A stretch of DNA of 64,000 bases from positions 12,725-76,724 of the forward strand of contig NIVC01000678.1 of the NCBI GenBank assembly GCA_002269645.1. Direction: 5' to 3'. The notes under the pieces are model-generated. The model was not told the DNA's origin. It did not search any database and was given only the letters and a program-made list of their open reading frames with translations. The translations under genes and the position numbers were made by a program. Within the stretch, counting starts at the first letter, position 1; the number at the start of each line of letters is the position of its first letter. This stretch comes from Macrostomum lignano (lineage: Eukaryota). Positions 3,156 through 44,565 of this stretch are shown here, in pieces.

Positions 3156-3953
3156 TCAGAACACCTGCTGGCACTCGCAGATGAAAGCTATGGTCGAATC
3201 GCAAGCAAAGTCGTCAATTCCATTTGTAAACCCGCTAAACAGAGCCGTGCAGGCCTGGTCTGGGAATCCATTGTCCGGCTGTCCTTTACCTTTGTCCCAC
3301 ACGTGCTGGCTGATTGACAGGTTGCAGTCTGCCCAACGCCAGCCGTCAAGTTTTATGGTGTTGGCCGAAGCCTGACTGCCGCCCAGGTAGTAGTCCAATG
3401 CCCCCATCTCAGGAGTTGTCAGGCTTAGATTTGTCAGTCGCATTAGATAGGCCGCTTCGTCAGTATCGATTGCGTCAGCCAACTTGGTTAAGCCCGGATC
3501 TAAATTGCAATGCAGATGAGCATTCGCCCAGGTGGCTGGCGATTTGCTCACCAGCTTGTAGGCGGTGCCGTGCAGAGTGTGCTCGTATCCGGGCGGACAC
3601 AGGCGACCCGGAGGTAGGCCGGGTAGAGACCTCACATACACAGTCACCTGACGAGTGCAGCTCGGCACAGACTGCACCCGGTGACTGCACGCATCGAACA
3701 GGAACAGCTTGCACTGACAGGCGCTATCAGTCAGCAGTCGGAAGGCCTGACACTTGTTCTTCCTAGCGCAGGCGATGCTGCACTCTAGCGGAGTGCACAG
3801 ACCCGGCACAGTCTGGGTGAAGCTGGCGTTCACGCAGTCCAGTCCAACAGTTTGATGGAATGCCCTCCTGTGCTGCTCGCTGCAGGACTCCGAAAGATTC
3901 ACCGCTGTGCTTAGCAGGTGCAGCAGAATCGTTCTGATGATGAAGAGCGACAT
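3156..3953 (-). CDS. Secreted PAN/Apple-like + C-type lectin domain protein, intronless, 265 aa
   Basis: Hydrophobic N-terminus. Apple-like Cys spacing (LECSIACARKNKCQAF..C.L). CTLD motifs CPPGY, TWANAHLHC, YYLGG, GWRWAD, GQPDNG..C, IDDFAC..FICE. Confidence 0.85.
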   Translation of the reverse strand: MSLFIIRTILLHLLSTAVNLSESCSEQHRRAFHQTVGLDCVNASFTQTVPGLCTPLECSIACARKNKCQAFRLLTDSACQCKLFLFDACSHRVQSVPSCTRQVTVYVRSLPGLPPGRLCPPGYEHTLHGTAYKLVSKSPATWANAHLHCNLDPGLTKLADAIDTDEAAYLMRLTNLSLTTPEMGALDYYLGGSQASANTIKLDGWRWADCNLSISQHVWDKGKGQPDNGFPDQACTALFSGFTNGIDDFACDSTIAFICECQQVF

Positions 3954-14417: not shown

Positions 14418-17400
14418 ATGTCAAAGCAGTTGGTCTCAGAGTTTGTCATTTGATATATCAGACTGTCTGCATTAAATAGTGTCGTTTTTCTGAGGGTGGG
14501 GTTTGTGAGGGTATCTCACTGATGCTGGATTATTTCTAATGGAGTTACTTATTGTCTGTACTAATTGTCCAGTCTGATCCAGTCTGTTCTGTGTGTCCTG
14601 TCTGATCCAGTCTGTTCTGTGTGTCCTGTCTGATCCAGTCTGGTCTGTGTGTCCTGTCTGATCCAGTCTGATCTGTGTGTCCTGTCTGATCCAGTCTGGT
14701 CTGTGTGTCCTGTCTGATCCAGTCTGATCTGTGTGTCCTGTCTGATCCAGTCTGGTCTGTGTGTCCTGTCTGATCCAGTCTGGTCTGTGTGTCCTGTCTG
14801 ATCCAGTCTGATCTGTGTGTCCTGTCTGATCCAGTCTGGTCTGTGTGTCCTGTCTGATCCAGTCTGTTCTGTGTGTCCTGTCTGATCCAGTCTGGTCTGT
14901 GTGTCCTGTCTGATCCAGTCTGTTCTGTGTGTCCTGTCTGATCCAGTCTGGTCTGTGTGTCCTGTCTAATCCAGTCCTTGTCTCTGCCACCCTGTCTGTG
15001 TGTCCTGTCTGATCCAGTCTGGTCTGTGTGTCCTGTCTGATCCAGTCTGGTCTGTGTGTCCTGTCTGATCCAGTCTGTTCTGTGTGTCCTGTCTGATCCA
15101 GTCTGGTCTGTGTGTCCTGTCTGATCCAGTCTGGTCTGTGTGTCCTGTCTGATCCAGTCTGGTCTGTGTGTCCTGTCTAATCCAGTCTGATCTGTGTGTC
15201 CTGTCTGATCCAGTCTGGTCTGTGTGTCCTGTCTGATCCAGTCTGGTCTGTGTGTCCTGTCTGATCCAGTCTGTTCTGTGTGTCCTGTCTGATCCAGTCT
15301 GGTCTGTGTGTCCTGTCTGATCCAGTCTGATCTGTGTGTCCTGTCTGATCCAGTCTGATCTGTGTCCTGTCTGATCCAGTCTGGTCTGTGTGTCCTGTCT
15401 GATCCAGTCTGGTCTGTGTGTCCTGTCTGATCCAGTCTGGTCTGTGTGTCCTGTCTGATCCAGTCTGGTCTGTGTGTCCTGTCTGATCCAGTCTGGTCTG
15501 TGTGTCCTGTCTGATCCAGTCTGGTCTGTGTGTCCTGTCTGATCCAGTCTGGTCTGTGTGTCCTGTCTGATCCAGTCTGGTCTGTGTGTCCTGTCTGATC
15601 CAGTCTGGTCTGTGTGTCCTGTCTGATCCAGTCTGTTCTGTGTGTCCTGTCTGATCCAGTCTGGTCTGTGTGTCCTGTCTGATCCAGTCTGTTCTGTGTG
15701 TCCCGTCTGATCCAGTCTGGTCTGTGTGTCCTGTCTGATCCAGTCTGGTCTGTGTGTCCTGTCTGATCCAGTCTGTTCTGTGTGTCCTGTCTGATCAAGT
15801 CTGGTCTGTGTGTCCTGTCTGATCCAGTCTGGTCTGTGTGTCCTGTCTGATCCAGTCTGGTCTGTGTGTCCTGTCTGATCCAGTCTGGTCTGTGTGTCCT
15901 GTCTGATCCAGTCTGTTCTGTGTGTCCTGTCTGATTCAGTCTGGTCTGTGTGTCCTGTCTGATCCAGTCTGGTCTGTGTGTCCTGTCTGATCCAGTCTGG
16001 TCTGTGTGTCCTGTCTGATCCAGTCTGTTCTGTGTGTCCCGTCTGATCCAGTCTGGTCTGTGTGTCCTGTCTGATCCAGTCTGGTCTGTGTGTCCTGTCT
16101 GATCCAGTCTGTTCTGTGTGTCCTGTCTGATAAAGTCTGGTCTGTGTGTCCTGTCTGATCCAGTCTGGTCTGTGTGTCCTGTCTGATCCAGTCTGGTCTG
16201 TGTGTCCTGTCTGATCCAGTCTGGTCTGTGTGTCCTGTCTGATCCAGTCTGTTCTGTGTGTCCCGTCTGATCCAGTCTGGTCTGTGTGTCCTGTCTGATC
16301 CAGTCTGGTCTGTGTGTCCTGTCTGATCCAGTCTGGTCTGTGTGTCCTGTCTAATCCAGTCCTTGTCTCTGCCACCCTGTCTGTGTGTCCTGTCTGATCC
16401 AGTCTGGTCTGTGTGTCCTGTCTAATCCAGTCCTTGTCTCTGCCACCCTGTCTGGTCTCTATCTCTATCCAGGTCTGGTTCGTTAATATTTTTCCTACTA
16501 CAATATGTTCTGCCCAGAAAAGAACAACCAACAGCTGATAGGGAATGCAGCTCAGACTCCTGATCCAGACTCTCCTCCCCATCAATTCCCCATCAAAATC
16601 TCCCGCACCAGGAGGCCCTGCTGAGCGGCGCCGCAGCGGGCCTGCTAGTGGACCTGTCCCTGTACCCGCTGGACACCCTGAAGACCCGCGCCCAGTCCAG
16701 CGCCGGCTTCTGGTCCTCGGGCGGCCTGCGCGGCCTCTTCCAGGGCGTCTCCGTTGTCTCCCTGCTGTCCATGCCGGGCGCCGCCGTCTTCTTCGTCACC
16801 TACGACACTGGCAAGCGGCGCCGACTGCCTCTGCCGGTCGCCGCTTGCCTCGGCGAAGCCGCCGCCTGCCTCGTCCGCGTGCCCTGCGAGGTGGTGAAGC
16901 AGCGCGCCCAGATCGACCGGCTGGGCCGTCGGCCCTACCGGATCTTCGCCGACTGCCTTCGCGAGGAGGGCCCGGCGGGACTCTACCGAGGCTTTCGCAG
17001 CACCATCATCCGCGAGCTGCCCTTCGCCAGCCTGCAGTTCCCGCTGTGGGAGGCCTTGAAGGCTCTGGCCGGGCCGGGCTGGGCCGACAAGCCCGCCACC
17101 TCCGCCGCCTCCGGGTTCGCCGCTGGCGGGCTGGCCGCCTTCCTCACCACCCCGCTGGACGTGGCCAAGACTAGGATTATGTTGGCGTCCAGGTGAGCAC
17201 TGCGGGTCGAGACCTTAGTGTCCCATAGATTGGCTGAATTCCCACGTAGGCTAAATGAATTCCCCCCAGTAGGCTGACAGAATTCCCCCTGTAGGCTGAA
17301 TGAATTCTCCACAGTCTGATTGAATTCCTCCAGTAGGCTGACTGAATTCCCCCTGCTGGCTGGCTAAATTCCCGCCAGTAGGCTGACAGAATTCCCCCTG

Positions 17401-17905
17401 TAAACTGAATGAATTCTCCACAGTCTGATTGAATTCCTCCAGTAGGCTGACTGAATTCCCTCAGTGGGCTGGCTGAATTCCCCCCCCCCGTAGGCTGACT
17501 GAATTACCCCAGTAGGCTGACTGAATTCCCTCAGTGGGCTGGCTGAATTCCCCCCCGTAGGCTGACGAAATTCCCTCTGTAGGCAGGCTGAATTGCCCGC
17601 AGTCTGATTGAATTCCCCTCAGCTTAAACGAATTCCCCATGCTCCATCTGAATTCCCTACAACCCAGTGTACAGCAAGCAATTTAACACAGAGGAACCTC
17701 TTCCTCAACTCCTGTCATTTGAAGCCACGACCGCCTGGCCTCCGGCAGCGTGCTGGCCGCCCTGTCCGCGGTGCACTCGGAGCGCGGCCTGCCGGGCCTG
17801 TTCGCCGGGGCGGCGCCGCGAACGGCCATGATTGCCATCGGCGGCGCCGTGTTTCTTGGCGTCTACGACACCGTGAGACTCCTGCTGAGCAGGCTGGCCA
17901 GTTAG
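14418..17905 (+). CDS. SLC25A26: Mitochondrial S-adenosylmethionine carrier (SLC25 family)
   Basis: Exons 14418-14432 (MSKQL, tentative), 16612-17192, 17725-17905. Carrier signatures YPLDTLKTR, VPCEVVKQR, TPLDVAKTRIM and the SAMC-like tail GGAVFLGVYD. Confidence 0.9.
14565..16450 (+). repeat. 28-bp intronic minisatellite TCTGTGTGTCCTGTCTGATCCAGTCTGG (~1.9 kb)
   Basis: Direct reading. The 28-nt period explains the long spurious minus-strand ORFs with a 28-aa repeat. Confidence 0.97.
17230..17640 (+). repeat. Degenerate intronic tandem repeat with CTGAATTCCCC..AGTAGG units
   Basis: Recurrent GAATTCCCC and GTAGGCTG in SLC25A26 intron 2. Confidence 0.85.
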
Positions 17906-18424: not shown

Positions 18425-21190
18425 AAGGTAATGTTTCTCATGCTAAGTCGCCTGTTCGCCTGTGGATGAATCTTGCGGTGCATATCAGCGTTGTCTACTA
18501 TCAGTAGTCTAAAAAGCATGTCAATTGACATTTTCAGCAGGCATCGGTCGGTGTTTATCACTACAGTCGGCGGCTCCAGCCGCTTCGCTGCGAGTTCTGC
18601 GGCGGCGTCGGTCGGTTCTCCGACATTGTGTCGCTCAGCCGGCTGGCTGTCACTGACTACGAGGCCCTGTTAAACCGCGGCTGGCGTCGAAGCGCCGGCA
18701 GGGTGTACCGGCTGCGGCCGGACCTGACCTGCTGCGCCAAGTTCCCAATGCGTCACCTGGTCGATGCGTTCCGGCCTAGCCGGAGCCAGCGGCGCTGTCT
18801 AAGGCGATTCGCCAGCGCTCTGTTTGGCAGCGCGCCAGTTGGGCCCGCTGGTGATTCCGATTTGCCAACCGGAAGTGGAATCTTTTATCAAACCGGAAGC
18901 GGAACTATCTATCAAGCCGGAAGTAGAACCAACTACCAAACCGAAAGCGGAACCAACTATCAAACCGGAAGTGGAACCAACTACCAAACCGGAAGCGGAA
19001 CCAACTATCAAACTGGAAGTGAAACCAACTATCAAACCGGAAGTGAAACCAACTATCAAACCGGAAGTGGAACCAACTATCAAACCGGAAGTGGAACCAA
19101 CTATCAAACCGGAAGTGAAACCAACTATCAAACCGGAAGTGGAACCAACTATCAAACCGGAAGTGGAACCAACTACCAAACCGGAAGCGGAACCAACTAT
19201 CAAACTGGAAGTGAAACCAACTATCAAACCGGAAGTGAAACCAACTATCAAACCGGAAGTGAAACCAACTATCAAACCGGAAGTGAAACCAACTATCAAA
19301 CCGGAAGTGAAACCAACTATCAAACCGGAAGTGAAACCAACTATCAAACCGGAAGTGGAACCAACTATCAAACCGGAAGTGGAACCAACTACCAAACCGG
19401 AAGCGGAACCAACTATCAAACTGGAAGTGAAACCAACTATCAAACCGGAAGCGGAACCAACTATCAAACTGGAAGTGAAACCAACTATCAAACCGGAAGT
19501 GAAACCAACTATCAAACCGGAAGTGAAACCAACTATCAAACCGGAAGTGAAACCAACTATCAAACCGGAAGTGGAACCAACTATCAAACCGGAAGTGAAA
19601 CCAACTATCAAACCGGAAGTGAAACCAACTATCAAACCGGAAGTGAAACCAACTATCAAACCGGAAGTGAAACCAACTATCAAACCGGAAGTGGAACCAA
19701 CTATCAAACCGGAAGTGAAAATATTTTACATTTTATCAGCAGCCGGATGCGCCCCGGAAAGGCCCGCTACAAGCGCTGGTCAGCCGGACTCGATGCACTG
19801 CGCGCCCGAGCCGGCGCCCTCGGCCAATCCGCCGACGCTCTGCTCGCCGAGCGCGCCAACCGTTGGCGCCGTCGTCGCGAGCTTCGCCAGCGCCGCCAGT
19901 CGGCGCCCAGCCTAGCCGAACTCGTCGACCCGCTGATGATTGGCGGTCCAGGCGGCCGCGGTCGCCTCCTGTGGCGCCTGGTGCCGTCGGACAGTCAGCT
20001 GGCCATCAGCTCCGGACACGCCTGCTACTCCGCCTACCAGTGCGCCGTCCACGGCGACTCCCCGGCCGACTGCGGCGAGGCCAAGTTCCGCCGATTTCTC
20101 TGCCTCAGTCCGCTGGCGGCGGAGGCGGCGGAGGCTGAGACCGACGTCCAGTGGCCGAAGGGATCCCACCATTCCCAGCTGCTGCTGGATGGCCGCCTGA
20201 TCGGCGTTGACGTCATCGACATTCTTGACAGGTTTGTTGGCGGGGACAGAGCGACCACACTAGCAGCTGCCTCTGCCATTCTCAAAGCTGCCACTCAGCC
20301 TGTTAAAAACTCCCCTCAGCCCCTCATCTACACTGAGAATCGCCCCTCAACCACACTGAGAATCGCCCCTCAACCACACTGAGAATCGCCCCTCATCTAC
20401 ACTGAGAATCGCCCCTCATCTACACTGAGAATCGCCCCTCAACCACACTGAGAATCGCCCCTCAACCACACTGAAAATCGCCCCTCATCTACACTGAGAA
20501 TCGCCCCTCAACCACACTGAGAATCGCCCCTCATCTACACTGAGAATCGCCCCTCATCTACACTGAGAATCGCCCCTCAACCACACTGAGAATCGCCCCT
20601 CAACCACACTGAGAATCGCCCCTCATCTACACTGAGAATCGCCCCTCAACCACACTGAGAATCGCCCCTCAACCACACTGAGAATCGCCCCTCATCTACA
20701 CTGAGAATCGCCCCTCAACCACACTGAGAATCGCCCCTCAACCGCACTGAGAATCGCGCCTCAACCACACTCCCTCAGCACCGTCTCCTCCGCCTACTTC
20801 TTTTTCGACCCGGCCTTCAAGCGCCTGCAGCTGGGCAAGGTCAGCGCCCTGCTGCAGCTGCGCCGCCTGCAGGGACACCCGAGGCTGAGGCACTACACCA
20901 TGGGCTCATACTCCCCGCTGTCTGTTAAGCTGGCCTACAAGGCGGAGTTTCAGCCGGCGCAGATCATGTGCCCCATCGCTCTGCGCTGGCTTCCATTCGA
21001 CAGAGACTATCGCTGTCGGCTTGAGGCCGGTCAGCTCAGAGGTCTCTATGCCGACCTCGGGGGTGCCGATGATGACGCTGAGGTTGGCGACTCCTCGGAC
21101 TCTGACGGTGTTCGGCGGGCTGGGCTGCGCCGGTTCGCCAGACTGGCTGGGCAGCAGTGCGCCTCTCGCTTTCGGCTGCTTGTTGACTGA
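18419..21190 (+). CDS. ATE1: Arginyl-tRNA--protein transferase 1
   Basis: N-domain RCEFC..DYEALLNRGWRRSAG..TCC. C-domain KFRRFLCLSPL, GSHHSQLLLDGRLIGVDVIDIL|STVSSAYFFFDP, YTMGSY..KLAYK. Exons: possible 18419-18427, 18541-20231 (contains a repeat that may be an intron), 20779-21190. Confidence 0.92.
18868..19720 (+). repeat. 24-bp minisatellite CCGGAAGT(G/A)GAACCAACTATCAAA, in frame within the ATE1 ORF
   Basis: About 35 copies; translate as GS(G/E)TNYQT without a stop. Confidence 0.97.
20290..20770 (+). repeat. 23-bp intronic minisatellite CACTGAGAATCGCCCCTCA(TCTA/ACCA)
   Basis: Direct reading in ATE1 intron 20232-20778. Confidence 0.95.
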
Positions 21191-23226: not shown

Positions 23227-23597
23227 CTGCGTGGGGTCGCGATGCTCACTGCTAATGTCATGACGACATGCAGTATTACATCAACAACAATTTTATATCA
23301 AAATATAATTTTACCTTTTTGGGTCCCAGTTGATTGGTCTATTTGGCCGGGTTCGCTCCGAATATCATCCATTTTTTCTGAAACAATTGACAGTCCATAA
23401 TTTGTGAGTTTTGTTTAAATGTGCTGGTCAGCTGATTCACACAAAACTATAAATGAAAATGACAAAATGACCTGGCACCTGGGGAAAATTGATTTAAATT
23501 TCTGATAGAGCCAATGATTTTAATTGCATTACTATTATATTTATAATCATAAAATAAATTTGTTTTAACTTTCCTAAAATATCTTATCACTATAATT

Positions 23598-25271
23598 TTG
23601 AAATTTTTTTCGTTGGAAACCGAAAAACAACGGAATCCAGAACTGGAAAAACGAAAAGAAACCGCAATGCAGGACTTGGTCATGCCTACAGGCACGACAA
23701 TCAGGTCACAGGAGACGCAAACGTCAAACAAGGTGGCGACTCCAAATGAACAAACAATGGAACCAGTTTGTACGATCCCGATGAGTGAAGCAAGCGTGAA
23801 GACAAACACGACCATAAGAAGGCGAACTATGGAGAACAAGATGGTCGAAATGAGAGCGAACACAACAATAGCGCCAAGACAAACCCTACGAATCTGGCCA
23901 ATGATTCTGATGGGACTGCTCATTTTTGCCGGAAGTTTCTGCGAAATCGAAGCGATGCAAACGGAAGGTACGCACACGCAATATGTGGACAGTCCAAAAT
24001 TTCGCACCGACATTGGAGCCCCCATAGCAATTCGGCTGCCGGAACAACAGGACTGCAAAATTCCAAAGGAAGGACAAGACGGACGGATAAAGCTTAAATT
24101 AACTTTACACGATGAGAACGCCGAGACACATAAAAGTGTCATGAAGATATGCCACAGAGAAGACTACAGTTTCACAGCGCAACTGTACAAAATCGCAGGA
24201 AAAACAGTATTCGTGGACTTGACAGTAGCGATTAAGCCACGAACAGTCACAGTGGAACAATGTAACTCGTGGAATGCAGGAGCTACAACAGAAGATGGAA
24301 CATTGGAAGAAGACCTCAAAGTGGATGGTCGCATCAGCCGATACTCTACGAAAAAATGGGTTCGAAATGACCTAGATAATCTGGCTAAGACCGGAGAGAA
24401 ATTAGAAATAACAGTCAGCACTGTGTTGACGAATGTACCATACTACGTTTCGGAAAATGGAATGAACTCGTTGTATGTGCCAGTAGACAAATGCAAATAC
24501 AAGGAGAGCAAGTGCCAACGGGACGAGAAAGCGGCAAATTTTAAAATATGGCCACTAGAACGCACTTTACCAGAACGACTTTGGTCAGTGACAAACTTCT
24601 ACGACAGAGAATATCGAGTGCGAGGTTCAAGACTGTACCAGATGGTATGGACAGTGCATGAACATTACCAATGCCAGTACCAGAAAGGACGACAACTGGT
24701 CGGATACATGCACACGGACTGGTTTCAATCGGAAGATATGACATACGTGCTAACCTTTCAGAGACCAGTAAAACTGAATGCATCATGTGCAGAAGACAAG
24801 TATACTTTATACAAGGCGGAAGCTCTAAGATTAGCTCGAGAAATCGCCAGACACAATCTACAGCAAGCACAAAAGCGAACGCACAAACAAGCCAACAAGG
24901 GGCGACAGCAAACGACTCTACAAGTAGGTGACAGAGTCATGCTACAAGAACCACTAAGAACTGCAAAACATCAACCACAATTTTCGGGACCGTATAGAGT
25001 GATTCGGAAACTCAACGAAACGAATGTAGCCATCCGATCGGAAGACAATAACAAGGAACCAATGCGGGTACACGTCGACAGATTAAAAAAGATGCAGAAC
25101 CCGGAGGAATCTGTTTTCTTGCCCGATTTCCAACCGACGGACCCCAGAAGAATGGCACTACAGCAGAGGAAGCCGCTATATAGAACAATTGGCACGCAAG
25201 TCTCGGATGAACTGGAAGAGCATCCCGCTCATGCATACAACTTGCGGAGCAGGGACAAAATCCAACACTAA
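23598..25271 (+). CDS. Retroelement ORF: hydrophobic signal-like segment + Cys-rich glycoprotein-like region fused to an integrase C-terminus
   Basis: IWPMILMGLLIFAGSFCEIEA, then a Cys-spaced ectodomain-like region, then REIARHNLQQAQ..LQVGDRVML..FSGPYRVIRKL..VHVDRLKK..YNLRSR. Confidence 0.75.
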   Translation: MKFFSLETEKQRNPELEKRKETAMQDLVMPTGTTIRSQETQTSNKVATPNEQTMEPVCTIPMSEASVKTNTTIRRRTMENKMVEMRANTTIAPRQTLRIWPMILMGLLIFAGSFCEIEAMQTEGTHTQYVDSPKFRTDIGAPIAIRLPEQQDCKIPKEGQDGRIKLKLTLHDENAETHKSVMKICHREDYSFTAQLYKIAGKTVFVDLTVAIKPRTVTVEQCNSWNAGATTEDGTLEEDLKVDGRISRYSTKKWVRNDLDNLAKTGEKLEITVSTVLTNVPYYVSENGMNSLYVPVDKCKYKESKCQRDEKAANFKIWPLERTLPERLWSVTNFYDREYRVRGSRLYQMVWTVHEHYQCQYQKGRQLVGYMHTDWFQSEDMTYVLTFQRPVKLNASCAEDKYTLYKAEALRLAREIARHNLQQAQKRTHKQANKGRQQTTLQVGDRVMLQEPLRTAKHQPQFSGPYRVIRKLNETNVAIRSEDNNKEPMRVHVDRLKKMQNPEESVFLPDFQPTDPRRMALQQRKPLYRTIGTQVSDELEEHPAHAYNLRSRDKIQH

Positions 25272-30705: not shown

Positions 30706-31852
30706 TTAGCGCTTCCTGCGCATCCTCAGGAAGTTGTTCTTGCGCCAGAAGGCGTGCCGACTACCGCCAATGGTCTGGTGGAACCGGTGACCCTTGCCCA
30801 GTCCGCGGCTCTTCTTAGAAGAGCTGGTCAGGCCGCGCATCTCCCTGTGCTTGTGCTTGGCGGTGCAGATCCAGTTGATGCGCGGGTCGCGCCTGATGGC
30901 CTTGTGGTTGGGATCCACCAGGATCACCTCGTAGAACTTGTAGGTGGAGTCCTGCGCGATCCAGTAGGAGCCCAGCACGCGGAGGGCGCCGATCTTGCGG
31001 CCGATTCGCTCCTGGTGTGTGGGAATTGGTTTGGGCATTGAATTGCAGAATGGAAGCCGCTTATCAAATTCATTTATCCCTTTATCATCCCGCTTCAGTT
31101 GTAGCCTAGTGCCACCCCTCCCTGTTCTTTTGTCATAGAGTGCCGCCACCCCCTGTTCTTCAGCCATAGAGTGGCGCCACCTCCTGTTCTTCAGCCATAG
31201 AGTGGCGCCACCCCCTGTTCTTCAGCCATAGAGTGGCGCCACCTCCTGTTCTTCAGCCATAGAGTGGCGCCACCCCCTGTTCTTCAGCCATAGAGTGGCG
31301 CCACCTCCTGTTCTTCAGCCATAGAGTGGCGCCACCCCCTGTTCTTCAGCCATAAAGTGGCGCCACCCCCTGTTCTTCAGCCATAGAGTGGCGCCACCCC
31401 CTGTTCTTCAGCCATAGAGTAGCGCCACCCCCTGTTCTTCAGCCATAGAGTGGCGCCACCCCCTGTTCTTCAGCCATAGAGTGGCGCCACCCCCTGTTCT
31501 TCAGCCATAGAGTGCCCTTTCCCCGGTCACACGTGACCCTGACCTCGGCGATGGCCTGATGGCTGCGCTGGTTCTTCAACTGGTTGACACCCTCGTGCAC
31601 CGGCTTGCCATAGGTGGCGCCCTTGGGCACCGGGCGCTTGCGACCGCCGCGGCGGATGCGGATCCGGTAGATGACGAAGCCCTGCTTGGCCTTGTAGCCA
31701 AGGCGGCGGGCCCTGTCCGGCCGGGTGGGCTTGGTGGCCCGGTGGATCACGTGCCTCTGGCGCAGGTGCCAGCAGCGCAGGCGCAAAATGAAGCGCATCA
31801 CATCGGATTGCTTTTTGCGGTACAGCTCCGAGATGAACTTGTAGGCGCCCAT
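30706..31852 (-). CDS. RPL15: 60S ribosomal protein L15
   Basis: Exons 31852-31544 and 31011-30706, phase 0. [28 protein letters not shown]|[24 protein letters not shown]. Confidence 0.98.
31140..31515 (+). repeat. 31-bp minisatellite CTGTTCTTCAGCCATAGAGTGGCGCCACCCC in the RPL15 intron
   Basis: About 12 copies. Confidence 0.96.
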
Positions 31853-31884
31853 GACGGCTGGAAGTGCAGCGGGGAAAGTGTGAG

Positions 31885-33120: not shown

Positions 33121-35240
33121 TCAAGAATCCGCCGCCGCAGCGCATGCCGATCCCGAGCAGCCGCGCCTGGCGCCGGCGCTACCGCAGCATTGGGCGCGAT
33201 TACGCCCAGCATCAGTAAGCATTCGCTGCTGCTGTTGCTTAGCCGAACAAGCCGAGGATTTGCCAACAGCCAGCCGGGGATTGCCGGAGTTCAAGCCGTC
33301 CAGCAGCACGCAGGCTTTGCACACTGGCTGGCTGCTGACGTAGCCGCACAACCGGCAGGTGTCCAGCTCCGGCATTCGAGCATCGGTACGGAATCGAATC
33401 TGTTCAGCGGCCTGGATAATGTGCAGCAGAGCGGCCGGCCTGGCCCGCTCCAGATCCTTCACCAGAGCCCTGGCGTGGCCCCTGTAGGCAGCCGGGGCGT
33501 ACAGGCACTCGGTGGCGAAGTAGTCAAGCCGTTTGAAATAGGCGTAGAGCACGATCTCCTTCTCGTAGGCGTACTTTAACGGCTTGCAGCGGGCCGGCAG
33601 GCCGCCGCCCGTGTGGGTGACGCCGTCGGCGCAGCGGGACAGCCTGGCCGCGTCGCCACGCAGGAGGTTCATCACGACGGTCTCGGCCACATCGTCAGCA
33701 TTGTGACCGGTGGCCAGTTTGTCAGCTTTAAGATGACCGGCGCCTCTGTCCAGGGCCTGGCGACGGAACACGCCGCAGAAGGTGCAATTGCTGCGCCGGC
33801 CAGCGGCCCGGACAACTTCGTCCATTGTCCAGCCGTACAGGTCGCGATAGGTGAAGATTGTGAGGGGCAGGCCGAGGCTGACCTGTACAATTTGATGGAA
33901 AAAGCCTGTTATACTACTTGATAATAAACAGCGTAAGTAGCTTTCTAATTTTATTTAACTTTTGATTCAATCCATAAGCTAAATTGTGAAGTTGATACCT
34001 GGACTTTAAAAGGTATTACCTGGGTTTCACAGGTGATACCTGGGTTGGACAGGTGATCCCTGGGTTTCACAGGCGATACCTGGGTTTCACAGGCGATACC
34101 TGGGTTTCACAGGTGACACCTGGATTTCAAAAGTGACACCTGGATTTCAAATGTGATACCTGGATTTCAAAAGTGACACCTGGATTTCAAATGTGACACC
34201 TGGATTTCAAAAGTGACACCTGGATTTCAAAAGTGACACCTGGATTTCAAAGGTGACACCTGGATTTCAAAGGTGACACCTGGATTTGAAATATGACACC
34301 TGGATTTCAAATGTGATACCTGGATTTCAAAGGTGACACCTGGATTTCAAAAGTGATTTCAAAAGTGATACCTGGATTTCAAAAGTGACACCTGGATTTC
34401 AAAGGTGACACATTGATTTCAAAGGTGATACCTGGATTTCAAAGGTGACACATTGAGTTCAAAGGTGATACCTGGATTTCAAATGTGACACATTGATTTC
34501 AAAGGTGATACCTGGATTTCAAAGGTGACACATTGAGTTCAAAGGTGATACCTGGATTTCAAATGTGACACATTGATTTCAAAGGTGATACCTGGATTTC
34601 AAAGGTGACACCTGGATTTCAAAAGTGATATCAAAAGTGATACCTGGATTTCAAAAGTGACACCTGGATTTCAAAGGTTACACCTGGATTTCAAAGGTGA
34701 TACCTGGATTTCAAAGGTGATACCTGGATTTCAAAGGTGATACCTGGATTTCAAAAGTGACACCTGGATTTTAAAAGTGACACCTGGATTTCAAAGGTGA
34801 CACCTGGATTTCAAAGGTGACACCTGGATTTCAAAGGTGACACCTGAATTTGATACAAAATGCTACACTGAGTTAAAACGATGACAAACCTCTGTGCGCC
34901 TCAGAGCGTCCAGAGAATCGTCCCGATAACCGGCAATGCCCTCATCAATAGCCAGCAGGCGCAGATCCAGCCCATAATTGTGCCTCTCATTTAGCGTCTT
35001 CAATAGGTAGGCCAGCACAGTGGAATCTTTGCCGCCGGATGCGCCAATAGCGACGCGTTCGCCGGGCGAGAACATCCGGCTGGAGACGATCGTGTCGTGA
35101 GTTTCAGCTTCGAATGCCCAGAAGAAGCAGTCGCGGCAGACTGCGTGGCCGGTTTTTGGCCGACGAAGCTGCGGCTTCTTCTCGCAGAAACGGCACCTGC
35201 GCTGCGGCTGCCGCTGCGGTTCAGCCTGCGGTGAGGCGGC
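33121..35240 (-). CDS. CTU1: Cytoplasmic tRNA 2-thiolation protein 1
   Basis: Exons 35240-34890 and 33882-33121, phase 0. CRFC..CRDC zinc site, PP-loop [32 protein letters not shown]-terminal CRLC..CKAC. No genomic in-frame ATG upstream of the zinc site. Confidence 0.95.
34015..34850 (+). repeat. 20-bp minisatellite CACCTGGATTTCAAAGGTGA in the CTU1 intron
   Basis: Direct reading; CACCT/AGGTG hairpin-capable unit. Confidence 0.95.
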
Positions 35241-35264
35241 CTGCAGTTCCAGAATGAGATGGCA

Positions 35265-36335
35265 TTGATGAGGCTGATGCTGGGGTGTGATTGATGAGGT
35301 TGATGCTGAGGCATGTGATTGATGAGGCTGATGCTGGGGAGTGATTGATGAGGCTGATGCTGGGGAGTGATTGATGAGGCTAATGCTGGGTGTAGAATAG
35401 ATGAGGCTGGTGCGGGGGAGTGATTGATGAGGCTGATGCTGGGTGTAGAATTGATGAGGCTGATGCTGGGGTGTGATTGATGAGGCTGGTGCTGGGGAGT
35501 GATTGATGAGACTGATGCTGGGTTGTGATTGATGAGGCTGGTGCTGGGGTGTGATTGATGAGGCTGGTGCTGGGGTGTGATTGATGAGGCTGGTGCTGGG
35601 TGTGATTGATGAGGCTGATGCTAAAGGTGTGGGATTGATGAGGCTGATGCTGGGGTTGGGATTGATGAGGCTGATGATGCAACATGTGATTGATGAGGCT
35701 GACGCTGGGGCATGTGAATGATGAGGCTGATGCTAAAGGTGTCGGATTGATGAGGCTGATGCTAAAGGTGTCGGATTGATGAGGCTGATGCTGGGGTGTG
35801 GGATTGATGAGGCTGGTGCTGGGGTGTGATTGATGAGGCTGGTGCTGGGGTGTGATTGATGAGGCTGGTGCTGGGGTGTGATTGATGAGGCTGATGCTGG
35901 GGTGTGGGATTGATGAGGCTTATGCTGGGGCATGTAATTGATGATGCTGGGTGTAGGATTGATGAGGCTGATGCTGGGGTGTGGGATTGAAGAGGCTGAT
36001 GCTGGGGTGTGGGATTGGTGAGGCTGATGCTGGGGTGTGGGATTGATAAGGCTGATGCTAAAGGTGTCGGATTGATGAGGCTGATGCTAAAGGTGTCGGA
36101 TTGATGAGGCTGATGCTGGGGTGTGGGATTGATGAGGCTTATGCTGGGGCATGTAATTGATGATGCTGGGTGTAGGATTGATGAGGCTGATGCTGGGGTG
36201 TGGGATTGAAGAGGCTGATGCTGGGGTGTGGGATTGGTGAGGCTGATGCTGGGGTGTGGGATTGATAAGGCTGATGCTGGGGCATGTGATTGATGAGGCT
36301 GATGCTGGGATGGGATTGATGAGGCTGATGCTTGA
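35265..36335 (+). repeat. 26-28-bp minisatellite GATTGATGAGGCTGATGCTGGGGTGT upstream of the CTU1 acceptor
   Basis: Direct reading. Confidence 0.94.
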
Positions 36336-36714
36336 TGTTTAAGGTGCTTTACTTTGCAAAGGATAACCGAAACAAAAAGTTAGTCTTAAAACGAATATGA
36401 AGAAGTCACAATATAATTTGGTTAGCTAGCAAAAATATGCATAATATACTCAAACAGCATTATAAAGATAACAAATGTGCTGCTAAAACCGGACACAATG
36501 AAATATGAAATGCTGCAACAGCTGAAAATCTACACTGCGCCTTACTTGTAACTTTTTTAACACAAAGCAATAAGTTTGAATTTGCTGCAGAAAGATATAA
36601 GAACATTTAAAGGTGGAAAATATTGAACCTCAGACTGCAGCAATGGTTGTATTGCAAAAAGTTACGCTCATAATTCACAGGCTTTAGCAAAAAAACAGAC
36701 AAATTATACACATT

Positions 36715-37085
36715 GACCAATAGGAGCACGGCATGGATTCCTCAGTTCTCTTGACCAATAGGAGCATGGCATGGATTCCCCAGTTCTCTTGACCAATAGG
36801 AGCACGGCATGGATTCCTCAGTTCTCTTGACCAATAGGAGCACGGCATGGATTCCCCAGTTCTCTTGACCAATAGGAGCACGGCATGGATTCCCCAGTTC
36901 TCTTGACCAATAGGAGCACGGCATGGATTCCCCATTTCTCTTGACCAATAGGAGCACGGCATGGATTCCCCATTTCTCTTGACCAATAGGAGCACGGCAT
37001 GGATTCCCCAGTTCTCCTGAACAATAGGAGCACGGCATGGATTCCCCAGTTCTCCTGAACCAATAGGAACATGGCATGGATTCCC
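36715..37085 (+). repeat. 38-bp minisatellite TTGACCAATAGGAGCACGGCATGGATTCCCCAGTTCTC downstream of the POLRMT stop
   Basis: About 9-10 copies, each containing CCAAT. Confidence 0.95.
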
Positions 37086-37211
37086 CTAACAATTGTGAAC
37101 GTCAGAATGCGCTATACGCTTGAAACGGAAAGACGTAGCGCTTCTCAGGCACACAATAACAAATCTAGAAGATAGTAAGTTATCTGTACAAAAAATATTG
37201 CCACAAGCATC

Positions 37212-40200
37212 TCAGGAGAAGAAATACTCGGACCGCAACACCTCGGACAGATCGAAGTCGCCCTTGTCGGGAATCTGCAGAATTCGAGAATTAAATCGCT
37301 TAGCAGCCTGCAGCTTCTGGCCGCTGAGGCTGGCCAATTCTGACTGACGAAATGAGAACACGCGATCAATATGCGAGCTGAGATCGGCTAGGATTGGCTT
37401 GCTGTGCAGCTGGACAAACTGCTGCCTACAGATCCTGCCCATGGCGTCCACGTCGCACGGATGCGTCCAGAAGCAGTCGTGCACCGCGGCAAAAGTGACG
37501 CCAAACTTCTGGCACTCCAATGCCGTTAGCATCATATGACACGAGTCGAGCGAGTGCACAAAATTAGGCGGAAACGCGTTGGACTGTTTGACCGGATCGG
37601 GCGGATACGGCTGCACAATGGGCAGGCCTAGCGGAGTTCGCCATTGGATTGAAGCCTGCCTCAGCTTGGCCACGTCCTTGGCCAGATCGGTGAACCAGTG
37701 CTGAATGTGGGTGGCGCTAGTGAAAATCCTGCCAATGCTGGACAGGGTCAGTTTAGCCAAATAGGCTGCTGCCTTGTGCCGCATCTCGCTAGGGAACTCA
37801 GCGTCCTTCAGCCTGGCCAGGATCTGCTGTATGGCGCCGTACTCCGTGACGCCGTAGACTGTGGTCATCACCGACTGCTTGATTGTGCGCCTAACTACGT
37901 AGCCTTGAAGCGACTGGGCAACCGCGTGACCTTGAGCGGCATCGGCTACTCTGGTAGACTCTACCAGATCTACAACAGCCTGGTAGACATCTTGCGGCCG
38001 GTCAACCGCTCGCAGATTGACAGCCAGAGCGCCGGCCACATCCCGGCCCATTGCGGCGTAGTGTTGCAGTCCGTTGCAGCTGCCGTCCTGGTGCACAGGG
38101 AACGAACTCACGTAGCGTTCCGGCCCGTCTGGATGCCTGGCAGCGGCGAGGATCTCAGAGCACGTGGCCAGAGTCTGCCAGGGAGCTTCGTCGTTCTGCC
38201 ACCAGCCGCGCCCGGTCCAGGGCCGTTCGGCGCTGTCGATGATATCCGGCAGCAGCGAGTCGGCCATGTCTAGCCGTTCGGCGTTTGTCAATTTTTTGCC
38301 AAGATCCGCCACATTGATGGCGTGAATGCGGAGCCAGCGCCAGCCGCGCTCGCCCAGAGGCTTGGCATTGTTGAAGCGAAGCAGCGAGCGGGACAGATCG
38401 CAGCTCATGTGGTTCAGATGGGGTGGCATTGGGTAGGCCCGGCCTCTGCAAAAGTTAATTTTACTTTTCGATACATATTGGCTTTTTGTGCAGTTTTGTA
38501 TTTTTCGATACATATCGGCTTTTTTGTGCAGTTTTGTATTTTTCGATACATATCGGCTTTTTTGTGCAGTTTTGTATTTTTCGATACATATCGGCTTTTT
38601 TGTGCAGTTTTGTATTTTTCGTTACATATCGGCTTTATTTCTCAGCCAGACGGTTCTCGAAAAATTCAAAGACAGACAGACAGCGCAAAACATATAGATT
38701 ATACTACGCTCGTAATTATAATAATTAATATATTATTACTAACCGACTACTCACCGAAAGTCCATATTATGCGGCAAGTAGAACGGCCGGTCCTTCAGCC
38801 AATCGGCAATGGACAGCCGGTAAAGCTCCGTGCACCAGAGAGAATAGCGCTCCCTTTCAGCTTTGCGCTCGGCCGCTTTCTCCCGGCGTAGGGCGGCAAT
38901 GTCGGCCCTCGACGCGCCCGGAGCCGGAGGCGCCAGGCGCTCTACAGATCGGGGTCGGGCAGGCAGCGCCAGGTGCTCGGCGCCGCCAGAATTGAAGCGG
39001 TCAGTTATCAAGCGGAGCATGGCTCTGTCAACTCGCCAGGCGCAGGAGCTCACGGTCTGGTCGCGGTTGTTGGGGAGAATTCAATTGATAGGATTAGCGC
39101 GTGAAAAAAGAAACAGATAAAATGAAATATAGGACTGTTTGAGTGTGAATATGGGGATGCTTAAGGAATTTGCAGCAGTATTTAGAAGTATGCATTGTAT
39201 AGTAGTATAGGTTTCTGGGAAGAATCAAATTTAGTGGATTCTGAGTCTGAGATGATGCTGATTTAAAGGATTCGGGGATAATGCAGATTTAAAGGATTAT
39301 GAGATGCAAATTTAGAGGATTCTGAGTCTGAGATGATGCAGAATTAGAGGATTTTAGGATGACGCCGGTTTAGAGAATTCTGATATGATGCAGATTTAGA
39401 GAAGATTCTGGGATGATGCAAGCAGATTTAAAGGATTCTGGGATGATGCAAGCAGATTTAAAGGATTCTGGGATGATGCAGATTTAAAGGATTCTGGGAT
39501 AATGCAGATTTAAAGGATTCTGGGATAATGCAGATTTAAAGGATTCTGGGATGATGCAGATTTAAAGGATTCTGGGATGATGCAGATTTATAGGATTCTG
39601 GGATAATGCAGATTTAAAGGATTCTGGGATGATGCAGATTTATAGGATTCTGGGATAATGCAGATTTATAGGGTTCTGGGATGATGCAGATTTATAGGAT
39701 TCTGGGAGGATGCAAATCTAGAAGATTATGGAAAGATGTAGAACTAGATGATTTTGAAGAATTAAAACCAATATATACTAAAACAGACGAAGCCAAGAAG
39801 CCACAGATATTCTAATTGGCTAAAGAAGAAATCAAGTGACATGGAAAGCAAGAAAATAAGCTAACTCATACTCACATGCAGTGCCTCAAGAACAGTCGGG
39901 GGCGGCCCAGACAGTCGGATTTCGCTCATCTGGGCCAGGGCATATTGCCTTAGCAATTCCGTATTTAAGGTCATGTAGCGAGCTGGCCAAAAAGGCTTAG
40001 TCAGCATTGGCAGCTTGGATGGCTGGAACATCAGCTTGGTGGCATCCTGCGCCTGCTGAAATGCTTTAGCGACTGTCGGATGAGCCCGGATGTGCTGCAC
40101 GTTGCTATCGGGATCCAGAACTCCGTACGTGGCCGGCACGCCTCGATAAGTGAGCTGGGCCAGGTGATCGGTCAGGTATTTGCCTAATTCGATGCGCCAA

Positions 40201-43200
40201 TGACGGGGCAGAGGCGGCCAGCCCAGGTCACCAGTTTCACGACCCAGCTCCTGGGGAATTATGGGAATTATTCGTATTGCAATTAATTGCTCGAAGCTTA
40301 GATGCCACCACTTTTAACATTTAGATGACAGCTGATTGAGGATTTCTTTGATGTAAGATCCCATCTACTGAGTGGATACTTACTGCGAATCTAAAATCCT
40401 ATTTTTTAGGATCCCACTACTTAAGATCCGACGATATCCGACGATATAAGATACTATCAGCTTAGGATCAGACAGATCTAAGATCCCATCAGTTTAGGAT
40501 CAAACAGATCTAAGATCCCATCAGTTTAGGATCAGACAGATCTAAGATCCCATCAGTTTAGGATCAAACAGATCTAAGATCCCATCAGTTTAGGATCAGA
40601 CAGATCTAAGATTCCATCAGCTTAGGATCAGACAGATCTAAGATCCCATCAGTTTAGGATCAAACAGATCTAAGATCCCATCAGTTTAGGATCCCACAGA
40701 TCTAAGATCCCATCAGCTTAGGATCAAACAGATCTAAGATTCCATCAGCTTACGATCAGACAGATCTAAGATCCCATCAGCTTAGGATCCCACAGATCTA
40801 AGATCCCATCAGCTTAGGATCAGACAGATCTAAGATCCCATCAGCTTAGGATCAGACAGATCTAAGATCCCATCAGCTTAGGATCAGACAGATCTAAGAT
40901 TCCATCAGCTTAGGATCCCACAGATCTAAGATCCCATCAGCTTAGGATCCCACAGATCTAAGATCCCATCAGCTTAGGATCAGACAGATCTAAGATTCCA
41001 TCAGCTTAGGATCCCACAGATCTAAGATTCCATCAGCTTAGGATCCCACAGATCTAAGATCCCATCAGCTTAGGATCCCACAGATCTAAGATCCCATCAG
41101 CTTAGGATCCCACAGATCTAAGATCCCATCAGCTTTCCCATCAGCTTAGGATCCCACAGATCAAAGATCCCATCAGCTTAGGATCCCACAGATCTAAGAT
41201 CCCATCAGCTTAGGATCCCACAGATCTAAGATCCCATCAGCTTAGGATCCCACAGATCTAAGATCCCATCAGCTTAGGATCCCACAGATCTAAGATCCCA
41301 TCAGCTTAGGATCCCACAGATCTAAGATCCCATCAGCTTAGGATCCCACAGATCTAAGATCCCATCAGCTTAGGATCCCACAGATCAAAGATCCCATCAG
41401 CTTAGGATCTCACAGATTTAAGATCCCATCAGCTTAAGACCCGCTACTAGAGGACCCAGCCATGGAAAATCCCATTGCAAAGAAGTGTAATCAAAGCAGC
41501 ACTGACCGCTCTAGCTTTGCGCTGAATTTTTTCATAGAACAAATCCGTCAGATCCCGCATAAAGTGAGGCTTTGGCATGTACTGCACAGCCTGTATAGAG
41601 GCCAGCATCACAGCCTGGCTGAGCAGAAACTGTACAGTCTCCTCTTCATCAAGCGCAATCACCAGCGGATAGATGGTCCGCCTAGCGGTTCTCTCGTCTC
41701 TGACTTTCAACTGACGCCGACGCTCCGGCACCAGGCGGCGCAGCTCGCGCAGCCAGTGGTCGCGCACCGCGGCGGCCTCTTTGGCTGCCTGACGCCGAGC
41801 CGCAGGCGTCACGGCCGGCAGAGGCTCTGAGACGCAAACGATGGACACAGCGGGTTCGGACTGCTCCAGCTGTGAGGTAGGAATGATTTATTTCAATATA
41901 TAAGGGGTTGCAGCCTAGTGGTTAAAGCGTCGGACTCGCGACTGAAAGGTCGGGGGTTCGATTCTAGACTCACTTAGAACAATTGTGTCCATGAGCAAAA
42001 GACACTTAACTCTGCATTGCTTCAGTTCACCCAGCTGTAAAATGGGTGCCAGCATTAGTTGGGGTAATTGACGGTGTGTGTGGCGACCCCCCCCCCCAGT
42101 CCTGAGCTGTCGGTTGCTTATCTGCCTATCAGGGCAGGTGTAATCAATTAATTTTATAGTATCGGAATAATAAACCAATCAGACTACTTTGCAGTTAGTG
42201 TTAATCAGTAGTGCTGGAGACATTTTCTCATTTATTCTGATTAATATGACAGCTAACAAAAGTCATGTTAACCTGCTCAGAAACTGGTCCTGGCCGGTAA
42301 CACTTGCAGAGGCCCACAGCCTACAGAAAGAACTTACAGACAACTGAAGCGCTCGGTCCCCAGCGCTGTTGTCCTCGGGAGCAACAGACTCCGATTGCTG
42401 CTTTGTCGATAAAAGCGAAGGAAGCCCAGCCAAGCGCAGACCAGCCATCAGCTCAGCATCCTGAGCTTCATCCGATAATTGATTTTGCCAATTGGAATCG
42501 GCCGCCAATCTTACTGTTAATTCGGCAACCTCGGCGCTGTTTAATCTGCCGGCTGCGCGTAGGCCGAGCGCCACCGCGCCTGCGCTCAACTGCTGACCAT
42601 CGCGAGCGGCGCCGGCCAAGGTGGACAGGCTGGCCGAGAGGGTGGGCCGGTGCAGCAGGATGGCGGCCGGGATCTGCGAGGGTAAAGTGCGGTAGACCGG
42701 CATGTAAGAGCAGTCCTGGGGACGCTTCTGAGTGGCGGTTGACTCTAAACGTGTAGGGTCTGGAGACAAGATTCTCAATGGTAGTCTAGGGGCGATTCTC
42801 AATGGTTGTCTAGGTTCGATTCTCAATGGTAGTCTAGGGGCGATTCTCAATGGTAGTCTAGGGGCGATTCTCAAGGGTAGTCTATGGGCTATTCTCAATG
42901 GTAGTCTAGGGCGAGTCTCGATGGTAGTCTTTGGGCGATTCTCAAGGGTAGTCTATGGGCTATTCTCAATGGTAGTCTAGGGCGAGTCTCGATGGTAGTC
43001 TTTGGGCGATTCTCAAGGGTAGTCTATGGGCTATTCTCAATGGTAGTCTAGGGGCGATTCTCAATGGTAGTCTAGGGCGAGTCTCGATGGTAGTTTTTGG
43101 GCGATTCTCAAGGGTAGTCTAGGGCGAGTCTCGATGGTAGTCTTTGGGCGATTATCAAGGGTAGTCTAGGGGCGATTCTCAATGGTAGTCAAGGGCGATT

Positions 43201-44565
43201 CTCAGTGTTAGTCTAGGGGCGATTCTCAATGGTGGTCTAGGGGCGATTCTCAATTGTAACCTAGGGGCGATTCTCAAAGGTAGTCTAGGGATGATTTGAA
43301 GGGTAGTTCAGTGCTTTTAGCGCCCTAGAAACGTCGGTTTCTAGACCAGCACAGGAACTAGCAGATCATTCAATAATTTTTACCTGTTCGTCCAGCACAA
43401 CCGCCCCGGACCACAGGCTGGCCAAGCTGCCAAACCTGGCCCGTTGCTCAGCCAAATAAGCCGCCGCTTTGTCATGCTCGCCTCGCAGACACAGGCACAG
43501 CAGCCAGGCCGCCAGCTCTTCATTATATCTATCGGATTTTTGAATAAAGGCCAGGCCAATGTTGGGCGCGAACTGGGCCGGGTCCGGCCGCTGACGGGGC
43601 GGCGGCACCCGAGCTTGGAGCAGCTCGACGGCCCGTCTACAACGCCGGCGTAGATTGGCATCGAGCCAGAGCAGCTCGGACATCTGGCTGAGCTGCTGGA
43701 CGAGTACAACGGCCAGAGTGCGAGGACAGCGCACATTTTCTAGCCGCTGGGCCCAGTCAAAAACTGCCGCAATCTCCTTGGCTGACGCTTTTGCTTTCGC
43801 TTGGCTAGCAACGGGCGGCGATTTCGACTGCCCGCTCTGACGATGATCGTCGCCTGCTTCGCCTGTCGAGCGTCGACGCCTGGCAACAGAGGCGGCGGGC
43901 GCAAGCGCCGCTGTGCTCCGCTGTTGCCGGGCCGCAAAGCCTGCGAGATTAGTGAATTGGTGGTTTTGTAAGAAATATTCATTATTAAAACAACAAAAAT
44001 GGCTCTATCTTACTGTTAGTAGACCAAAGGGATATTAAATGACAGTAAATTAAAAAACATTGACATAGACATAGACAGTAATTCTAAGCATTGTGTACGG
44101 GTTTTATGCTGTGCAGACAGGATTTTCTGTTGGTCTAGAGGCGATTCTTAAGGATAGTCTAAGGGTGATTATCAAGGATAGTCTAACGGTGATTCTCAAG
44201 GATAATCTAGGGGCGATTCTCAAGGATAGTCTATGGGCGATTCTCAAGGATAGTCTAGGAGTGATTCTCAAGGAAAGTCTAATGGTGATTCTCAAGGATA
44301 GTCTAACGGTGATTCTTAAGTATAGTATTAGAGTGATTCTGAAAGGTAGTCTAGGGGCGATTCTGAAAGGTAGTCTAGGGGCGATTCTGAAAAGTAGTCT
44401 AGGGGCGATTCTGAAAGGTAGTCTAGGGGCGATTCTGAAAGGTAGTCTAGGGGCGATTCTGAAAGGTAGTCTAGGGGCGATTCCAAGCTACAAACGGCAA
44501 AACTTACAGTGCCGACAAATATGTTGTGTCTCTGATAAGGCAAAAATGCGAAGCAGCGGCAACAT
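37212..44565 (-). CDS. POLRMT: Mitochondrial DNA-directed RNA polymerase (T7-like), ~1074 aa, 7 exons
   Basis: Exons 44565-44508, 43940-43384, ~42673-42338 (acceptor uncertain), 41869-41507, 40250-39876, 39056-38755, 38445-37212, all phase-consistent. Motifs HNMDFR|GRAYP, HQDGSCNGLQHYAA, RRTIKQSVMTTVYG, FPPNFVHSLD, AVHDCFW. Confidence 0.95.
38465..38640 (+). repeat. 38-bp intronic minisatellite TTTCGATACATATCGGCTTTTTGTGCAGTTTTGTATTT
   Basis: About 4-5 copies in the last POLRMT intron. Confidence 0.9.
39230..39720 (+). repeat. 26-bp intronic minisatellite GGATTCTGGGATGATGCAGATTTAAA
   Basis: Direct reading; degenerate at both ends. Confidence 0.92.
40400..41440 (+). repeat. 32-bp GATC-rich intronic minisatellite GATCTAAGATCCCATCAGCTTAGGATCCCACA
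   Basis: Direct reading. Confidence 0.96.
41903..42140 (+). mobile_element. tRNA-derived CORE-type SINE, antisense in a POLRMT intron
   Basis: A-box-like TAGTGGTTAAAG and B-box GGTTCGATTC. Then TGTGTCCATGAGCAAAAGACACTTAAC..CAGCTGTAAAATGGG, which resembles the CORE domain. Confidence 0.8.
42765..43305 (+). repeat. 24-bp intronic minisatellite GATTCTCAATGGTAGTCTAGGGGC (POLRMT intron 2)
   Basis: Direct reading. Confidence 0.93.
44130..44482 (+). repeat. 24-bp intronic minisatellite GATTCT(C/G)AA(G/A)G(A/G)TAGTCTAGGGGC (POLRMT intron 1)
   Basis: Same family as the intron 2 array. Confidence 0.93.

Follow-up and report, generated by a model that had tools for sequence, protein, structure and literature searches.

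In flatworms, the start codon of an mRNA can come from a trans-spliced leader and not from the gene itself. All flatworm spliced leaders (SLs) reported so far have a terminal ATG (PMC12582326), and it is established that the SL AUG can serve as the initiator codon (Cheng et al. 2006, cited in PMC9851317 and PMC12582326). In Schistosoma mansoni, 28% of the trans-spliced mRNAs carry the SL AUG in frame, and over 40 cDNAs depend on it for translation start (Cheng et al. 2006, cited in PMC9851317). Here we examined CTU1 of Macrostomum lignano, a gene whose conserved first exon has no genomic start codon. It lies on the minus strand of a 64,000-nucleotide (nt) stretch of DNA (the window), which is the final 64 kb of scaffold NIVC01000678.1 in assembly Mlig_3_7 (GCA_002269645.1). 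All coordinates are window positions; the position in the record is the window position plus 12724. Window positions 38213-30121 were 100% identical to the NIVC01000678.1 locus over the 8093 nt compared. A first-pass annotation of this locus had started from the premise that flatworm SLs end in an AUG usable as an initiator. The premise agrees with passages of the literature, for M. lignano as well, whose SL ends in ATG (PMC8629364, PMC12582326, PMC9851317).

M. lignano has a single 35-nt SL, CGGTCTCTTACTGCGAAGACTCAATTTATTGCATG, with ATG at its end. Its 3' end reads ...ATTTATTGCATG, the final letters being TTGCATG (PMC8629364). The leader stretch ...CAATTTATTGCATG marks SL-containing reads of this organism. 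Trans-splicing affects about 30% of the M. lignano genes, with an enrichment of conserved ones, the top motif of the trans-splice acceptors is [T/C]TNCAG, and about 15% of the genes are in operons as defined by repeat-adjusted spacers of less than 1 kb (PMC8629364). A genome-guided transcriptome underlies the GenBank models. The TBONE pipeline split its transcriptional units into g1, g2 and so on at peaks of SL reads and at poly(A) sites, and open reading frames (ORFs) were called by TransDecoder after this cutting (PMC5730564).

We consider that the initiator AUG of CTU1 is probably provided by the trans-spliced SL and that the 5' end of the mRNA is made by SL trans-splicing, with a probability of roughly 0.8. 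Similar to the SL-AUG-dependent mRNAs of S. mansoni, CTU1 belongs to an organism with an AUG-ending SL, it has a phase-0 acceptor at the start of a conserved housekeeping ORF, and its full-length protein cannot be obtained from a genomic AUG. Unlike them, CTU1 comes from a free-living macrostomorph and not from a trematode, and it has several tandem in-frame acceptors. Moreover, the S. mansoni cases were established with cDNA and translation assays, while CTU1 is known here from genome and annotation. The slORFs of slORFfinder also take their start codon from the SL instead of the gene, but they were defined by SL reads and ribosome footprints (PMC9851317). The trans-spliced and operon genes of M. 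lignano (Wudarski et al. 2017, PMC5730564; Ustyantsev and Berezikov 2021, PMC8629364) are in the same organism and use the same SL. CTU1 resembles these genes: it is conserved, it is annotated as an internal gene (g2) of a multi-gene unit, its repeat-adjusted spacer is below 1 kb, and its CTGCAG matches the reported acceptor motif (PMC8629364). The searched passages of PMC5730564 and PMC8629364 do not discuss whether individual proteins depend on the SL AUG, and the coding sequences (CDSs) were deposited as 'partial'. The SL-AUG mechanism has been known since 2006, and CTU1 is a further instance of it that changes no concept. SL1/SL2 trans-splicing of nematode operon genes is similar in that a polycistronic precursor is resolved by the SL and the outron is removed together with its upstream AUGs. 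However, nematode SLs are not known to end in AUG, and thus they give a cap and a leader and no initiator codon, unlike the M. lignano SL.

As judged from its sequence, the gene is CTU1, the catalytic subunit of the cytoplasmic tRNA U34 2-thiolase (CTU1/Ncs6/NcsA, a PP-loop ATPase). Its CDS has 370 codons in two exons and ends with TGA. In the following lines and below, a slash marks a splice boundary.

34890-35240, minus strand: CTU1 coding exon 1, 117 codons, with the N-terminal zinc finger and the PP-loop motif SGGKDS; donor GAG/gtttgt (34890/34889).
33883-34889, minus strand: CTU1 intron 1, 1007 nt, gtttgt...gtacag.
33121-33882, minus strand: CTU1 exon 2, with the remaining PP-loop domain and the C-terminal zinc ribbon; stop TGA at 33123-33121.
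35127-35195, minus strand: N-terminal zinc-finger cysteines, CRFC at 35195-35184 and CRDC at 35138-35127.

Most of intron 1 is a minisatellite with a 20-nt period (33989-34851). The PP-loop domain, with its SGGKDS, matched PF01171 (ATP_bind_3, E=3e-13), and residues 293-322 matched the zinc ribbon PF16503 (zn-ribbon_14, E=3e-15). Full-length CTU1 is 99% identical to a UniProt entry for 'Cytoplasmic tRNA 2-thiolation protein 1' of Macrostomum lignano. The Cys codons of the zinc site are at 35195, 35186, 35138 and 35129, with the spacing CRFC-x15-CRDC. Residues 16-315 align with 6SCY, the archaeal [4Fe-4S]-dependent U34 tRNA thiolase NcsA (E=4e-46). The alignment begins at RCRFC of CTU1, against archaeal residue 5, and places CRFC-x15-CRDC opposite KCRKC...CKEC. 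In 6SCY, cysteines also stand opposite those of NCTFCG and ECLY.

There is no genomic start codon ahead of the zinc site. The exon opens ...ggaactgcag/GCC GCC TCA CCG CAG, the AG occupying 35242-35241 and the exon beginning with base 35240, and its sequence starts GCC GCC TCA CCG CAG GCT GAA CCG CAG CGG CAG CCG CAG CGC AGG TGC CGT TTC TGC. Upstream of 35240 the CTU1 frame runs through 165 open codons with no ATG among them.

35733-35735, minus strand: TAG, the first upstream in-frame stop, 165 codons above exon 1.
35073-35075, minus strand: the first in-frame genomic ATG, codon 56, behind both CxxC pairs and 13 residues ahead of SGGKDS.
35263-35265, minus strand: out-of-frame ATG in the presumed outron, in frame +1, stopping after 14 codons; trans-splicing would remove it.
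35260-36332, minus strand: minisatellite forming the bulk of the presumed outron, 28-nt period, 39.7 copies; the CTU1 frame is partly open in it and free of in-frame ATG.

Another ATG at 35314 (minus strand) is in frame +2, and no ATG other than this one and that at 35265 is close to the start of exon 1. The first-pass annotation had described an exon opening at CTGCAG/GCC GCC TCA in phase 0 and encoding CRFC..CRDC, a first in-frame ATG (35075) lying behind this zinc site, an out-of-frame ATG at about 35265, and about 1 kb of minisatellite upstream. All of this description stands.

Comparison with homologues places the start of the protein near the start of the exon. GGKDS is at least 45 residues from the N-terminus in all 119 full-length homologues (median 68). 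In CTU1 this offset is 68, equal to the homologue median, if translation begins at the first exon codon, and it is 13 from the ATG at 35075. In 102 of the 119 homologues a strict CxxC..CxxC pattern was recognised, and its first Cys follows a Met at a distance of 4-78 residues (median 14). Upstream of 35075, the codons share 60-70% identity with homologues, through RPKTG..C..C..FE.E, and therefore they are coding. From the sequences compared, the N-terminal zinc finger is conserved from archaea to plants and animals. The homeolog on NIVC01001291.1 and two UniProt models from an earlier assembly have the same CTU1 frame relation, which means that the ATG is not missing through an assembly error.

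The start of exon 1 contains several possible acceptors. Between 35242 and 35197 there are six AGs, and five of them (the CTGCAG site and four in-frame CAG codons) are in phase 0, with candidate exon starts at 35240, 35225, 35213, 35207 and 35201.

35241-35246, minus strand: CTGCAG, the best candidate trans-splice acceptor and the only AG here that matches [T/C]TNCAG; exon start 35240, phase 0.
35201-35240, minus strand: Pro/Gln-rich N-terminal stretch with four further in-frame CAG; alternative starts at 35225, 35213, 35207 and 35201.

Since all five candidate acceptors are in phase 0, the SL AUG would become the initiator whichever of them is used. In GenBank, CTU1 begins at the third AG (exon start 35213), 27 nt inside 35240. 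The N-terminus may be M-AASPQ... or up to 13 residues shorter, for example M-RQPQRRC..., and the zinc finger is intact either way. In the homeolog (positions 2992-3010 of that locus, compared with window 35240-35201), 12 nt, GCTGAACCGCAG, are missing, which is one P-Q unit and one in-frame acceptor. The run of in-frame CAG is preserved in frame despite this 12-nt indel. One might suppose that five phase-0 AGs within 40 nt are a selected 'landing pad' that ensures an in-frame SL AUG, making CTU1 synthesis strictly conditional on trans-splicing and coupling wobble-uridine thiolation and translation tuning to stem-cell trans-splicing. We regard this as doubtful.

The public models of CTU1 form a cluster of four M. 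lignano proteins.

PAA78570.1 (BOX15_Mlig006805g2), starting at window 35213, minus strand: from this scaffold; 'partial'; begins directly after ccgcAG.
PAA69784.1 (BOX15_Mlig015290g2), from the homeolog on NIVC01001291.1: 'partial'; starts PQRQPQRRC, 9 nt past the CTGCAG/ of that copy.
UniProt A0A1I8I9C7, window type: without Met; extends back into the repeat.
UniProt A0A1I8H5K8, homeolog type: without Met; extends back into the repeat.

None of these four models of CTU1 and its homeolog has a start codon or an upstream exon. A 5'-partial CDS that starts inside exon 1 beside an AG is the expected product of a cut at a trans-splice peak. A cut made solely at the poly(A) site of the upstream gene POLRMT would leave a transcript with the in-frame TAG, and the ORF caller would then pick the ATG at 35075. 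We infer both trans-splicing at exon 1 of CTU1, which the published pipeline and the position of the GenBank 5' boundary indicate indirectly, and translation from the SL AUG. The 'partial', Met-less database entries of CTU1, and those of ATE1 in the same window (see below), would then be explained because their start codon comes from the SL. Exact database look-ups of CTU1 with an SL Met and of CTU1 starting at codon 56 gave no match, and the gene ids are absent from the supplements of PMC5816591 and PMC5730564. The first-pass annotation had deduced a trans-spliced, SL-AUG-started protein. The phase-0 acceptors and the four start-less models agree with that, while its specific product M-AASPQ.. 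and the junction at 35240 are one option among the five. At the other end of PAA69784.1, the deposited CDS has a frame change near its 3' end and terminates in unrelated sequence.

CTU1 is g2 and RPL15 is g3 of the unit Mlig006805.

37212-44565, minus strand: POLRMT, upstream of CTU1, 1074 residues, ATG at 44565; presumably g1 of the transcriptional unit of CTU1.
30706-31857, minus strand: RPL15 (BOX15_Mlig006805g3), downstream of CTU1; genomic ATG at 31852; likely acceptor ttccag/CCGTC.

The spacer from the POLRMT stop (37212) to the CTU1 acceptor (35241) is 1970 nt, of which 1447 nt are tandem repeat and about 523 nt are left. This repeat-adjusted length is below the 1-kb operon threshold of M. 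lignano, and Mlig006805g2 and g3 share a unit. The primary transcript is probably one transcriptional unit, POLRMT-CTU1-RPL15. The outron of CTU1, with the 1-kb minisatellite and the out-of-frame ATG at 35265, would be replaced by the 35-nt SL (...UUGCAUG), joined at 35241/35240 or at one of the four CAG sites down to 35202/35201. The terminal AUG of the SL would be codon 1, and the product would be 0 or 5-13 residues shorter, with the zinc finger kept. An Rfam scan at the gathering threshold found no SL RNA gene in the window, and a search of the window for the 3' half of the SL gave just one chance-level match with 3 mismatches.

CTU1 was also compared with the class of SL-AUG-initiated flatworm mRNAs. 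M. lignano possesses an SL RNA with a terminal AUG in its leader, and joining at five of the six AGs, CTGCAG and the GenBank boundary among them, would put this AUG in frame with the conserved ORF. The full-length protein cannot be reached from any genomic in-frame AUG. CTU1 shows these three of the five defining features of the class, a fourth, trans-splicing itself, has indirect support, and the fifth, initiation at the SL AUG, is predicted.

Several points weigh against an SL-provided start. The trans-splice site is deduced from an annotation boundary, and in Macrostomum initiation at the terminal ATG of the SL has been termed only 'likely' (PMC10468722). The 5' boundaries of the annotation are imprecise: in this assembly the likely acceptor precedes the annotated 5' end by 0-39 nt, namely by 2-23 nt in RPL15 copies and by 39 nt in ATE1, and the homeolog CTU1 model begins 9 nt past CTGCAG/ and not after an AG. 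Moreover, POLRMT in the same window has a short first exon with an ATG behind a minisatellite-filled intron, and a weak upstream mini-exon candidate (ATG 36671) exists for CTU1 itself.

The last two points lead to the rival that survives best, although we consider it improbable. A short cis-spliced first exon beyond the minisatellite could give the ATG, with ATG AGC/gtaact joined to 35240 to make M-S-AASPQ....

36666-36671, minus strand: cis-spliced mini-exon candidate ATG AGC/gtaact, two codons, phase 0; the only passable donor.

POLRMT has the same layout, its ATG (44565) being in a first exon of 58 coding nt (MLPLLRIFALSETQHICRH, donor T/gtaagt) and its first intron holding a minisatellite at 44133-44487. 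An SL-AUG start of POLRMT at ggcaacag/CGG was rejected, as the annotation has the genomic ATG 44565 in an upstream mini-exon. Because POLRMT looked alike and yet has a genomic ATG, an ATG-less exon that opens with an in-phase AG is insufficient evidence alone. The CTU1 candidate is a phase-0 ATG..GT with a partial donor match and a TATAAT-like motif about 35 nt upstream, and CTU1 already uses a weak donor, gtttgt, for intron 1. The first-pass annotation had proposed looking for an upstream ATG exon in phase 0, and a scan of 35241-37211 returned this single weak candidate (36671-36666) among 36 phase-0 ATG..GT combinations, where one such donor is about the chance expectation. Furthermore, the exon is in none of the four public models, which are all 5'-incomplete and include a genome-guided, transcript-based one. 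A GenBank boundary inside exon 1 would be unexpected if spliced reads reached an upstream exon. Conservation is silent here, because the two genomic copies are 98% identical at the mini-exon.

Translation from the ATG at 35075 is very improbable. It would give CTU1 without its N-terminal zinc finger, the preceding codons being an untranslated leader. This is the sole in-frame genomic ATG, and leaky scanning might yield a minor product from it. However, the 55 preceding codons resemble homologues as coding sequence does, the start would leave the PP-loop closer to the N-terminus than in any of the 119 homologues, and the zinc finger belongs to a solved fold (6SCY).

We give equally little weight to non-AUG initiation without trans-splicing, at the in-frame CUG 35246, CUG 35252 or AUU 35255. 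These near-cognates are at most 15 nt upstream of the exon start, and the UniProt models read through them. But the out-of-frame AUG at 35265 just upstream would capture scanning ribosomes, nothing favours these codons, the organism has an AUG donor, and the gene is internal to a transcriptional unit that was cut. Finally, an assembly indel that masks an ordinary start, the ATG at 35265 being truly in frame, is hardly credible: this ATG is just 25 nt upstream and the assembly is PacBio-based, but the homeologous locus and two protein models from an independent earlier assembly have the same frame relation, long ORFs elsewhere in the window are intact, and ATE1 and the carrier gene described below would have to contain the same error.

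With an SL-provided start, CTU1 would be a case, open to checking in a free-living model flatworm, in which a conserved and presumably essential enzyme needs the SL AUG for its full-length form. For annotation, an SL Met should be added, and the CDS should neither be truncated nor read into the repeats. The design of M. lignano transgenes and knock-ins and ortholog sets made from these proteomes would also be affected. An SL AUG may also be the cause behind further 'partial' entries of M. lignano. Each of them needs its own check, because RPL15, which has its own ATG, is also called 5'-partial.

There are five GenBank copies of RPL15. All are 'partial', with 198, 199, 200, 201 and 205 residues, each beginning at a different codon, from which the imprecision of the GenBank 5' boundaries here follows. 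Relative to the probable acceptor ttccag/CCGTCATG, all of them start downstream, four of the five inside the true CDS. The RPL15 ATG is 5 nt past ttccag/. Trans-splicing of RPL15 at that site, if it occurs, would place the SL AUG out of frame, at the head of a short, overlapping upstream ORF. In a neighbour-joining tree of its C-terminus, POLRMT grouped with Fasciola, Paragonimus and Hymenolepis (79/100 bootstrap). A tttcag is found 2 nt ahead of the POLRMT ATG at 44565.

ATE1 (arginyl-tRNA-protein transferase, plus strand, to about 21190) repeats the CTU1 pattern of a start-less conserved exon at an acceptor, as read from its sequence. It opens cattttcag/CAG GCA TCG at 18537/18538 with no ATG. 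An in-frame TGA (18526-18528) is three codons upstream and an out-of-frame ATG is at 18518. From residue 19 onwards the sequence matches the ATE_N domain (PF04376). The deposited model PAA78567.1 (BOX15_Mlig018227g7) is 'partial' and starts QPLRCEFCGG at 18577, and our reconstruction matched it exactly. The deposited ATE1 (688 residues) keeps a minisatellite with a 24-nt period (18867-19720, about 280 residues of GSxTNYQT) as coding between ATE_N and ATE_C, and the other ATE1 copy has 588 residues and is 100 residues shorter. On both strands, several frames are open through this minisatellite, which could be either an intron that was not recognised or a coding repeat with true polymorphism. 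Spliced ATE1 versions without the minisatellite had no exact database match.

The SL-AUG pattern may also be present in an SLC25A26-like mitochondrial carrier (16545-17902, plus strand). It opens cccgcaccag/GAG GCC CTG at 16611/16612, with an in-frame stop 17 codons upstream, no ATG in between and an out-of-frame ATG at 16545. The SL AUG would give M-EALLSGAAAGLLVDLSLYPLDTLKTR. This acceptor does not match [T/C]TNCAG. The carrier is absent from the GenBank annotation, and exact look-ups of its predicted protein versions were unmatched. Each of the three candidate SL-AUG genes has an out-of-frame ATG 20-70 nt upstream of the acceptor (35265, 18518 and 16545), within the segment that would be lost on trans-splicing. 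This fits with trans-splicing clearing upstream AUGs, as three cases without a statistic.

Tandem repeats make up 16,515 of the 64,000 bases (26%) in 38 arrays. Nearly all of them are intronic or intergenic, including those on both sides of CTU1. After subtraction of repeats, the spacers between POLRMT, CTU1 and RPL15 are about 0.4-0.5 kb. Four other ORFs in the window were assigned by eye. The ORF at 53357-56071 (plus strand, 904 residues) has a P-loop NTPase motif, GDTGAGKST, and is possibly NACHT-like. The ORF at 59093-60016 (minus strand) is a possible BIR plus RING (IAP-like) protein, and the one at 3156-3953 (minus strand) appears to encode a secreted Cys-rich protein, possibly C-type-lectin-like. 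The long ORF at 23553-25268 (plus strand) may be derived from a retroelement.

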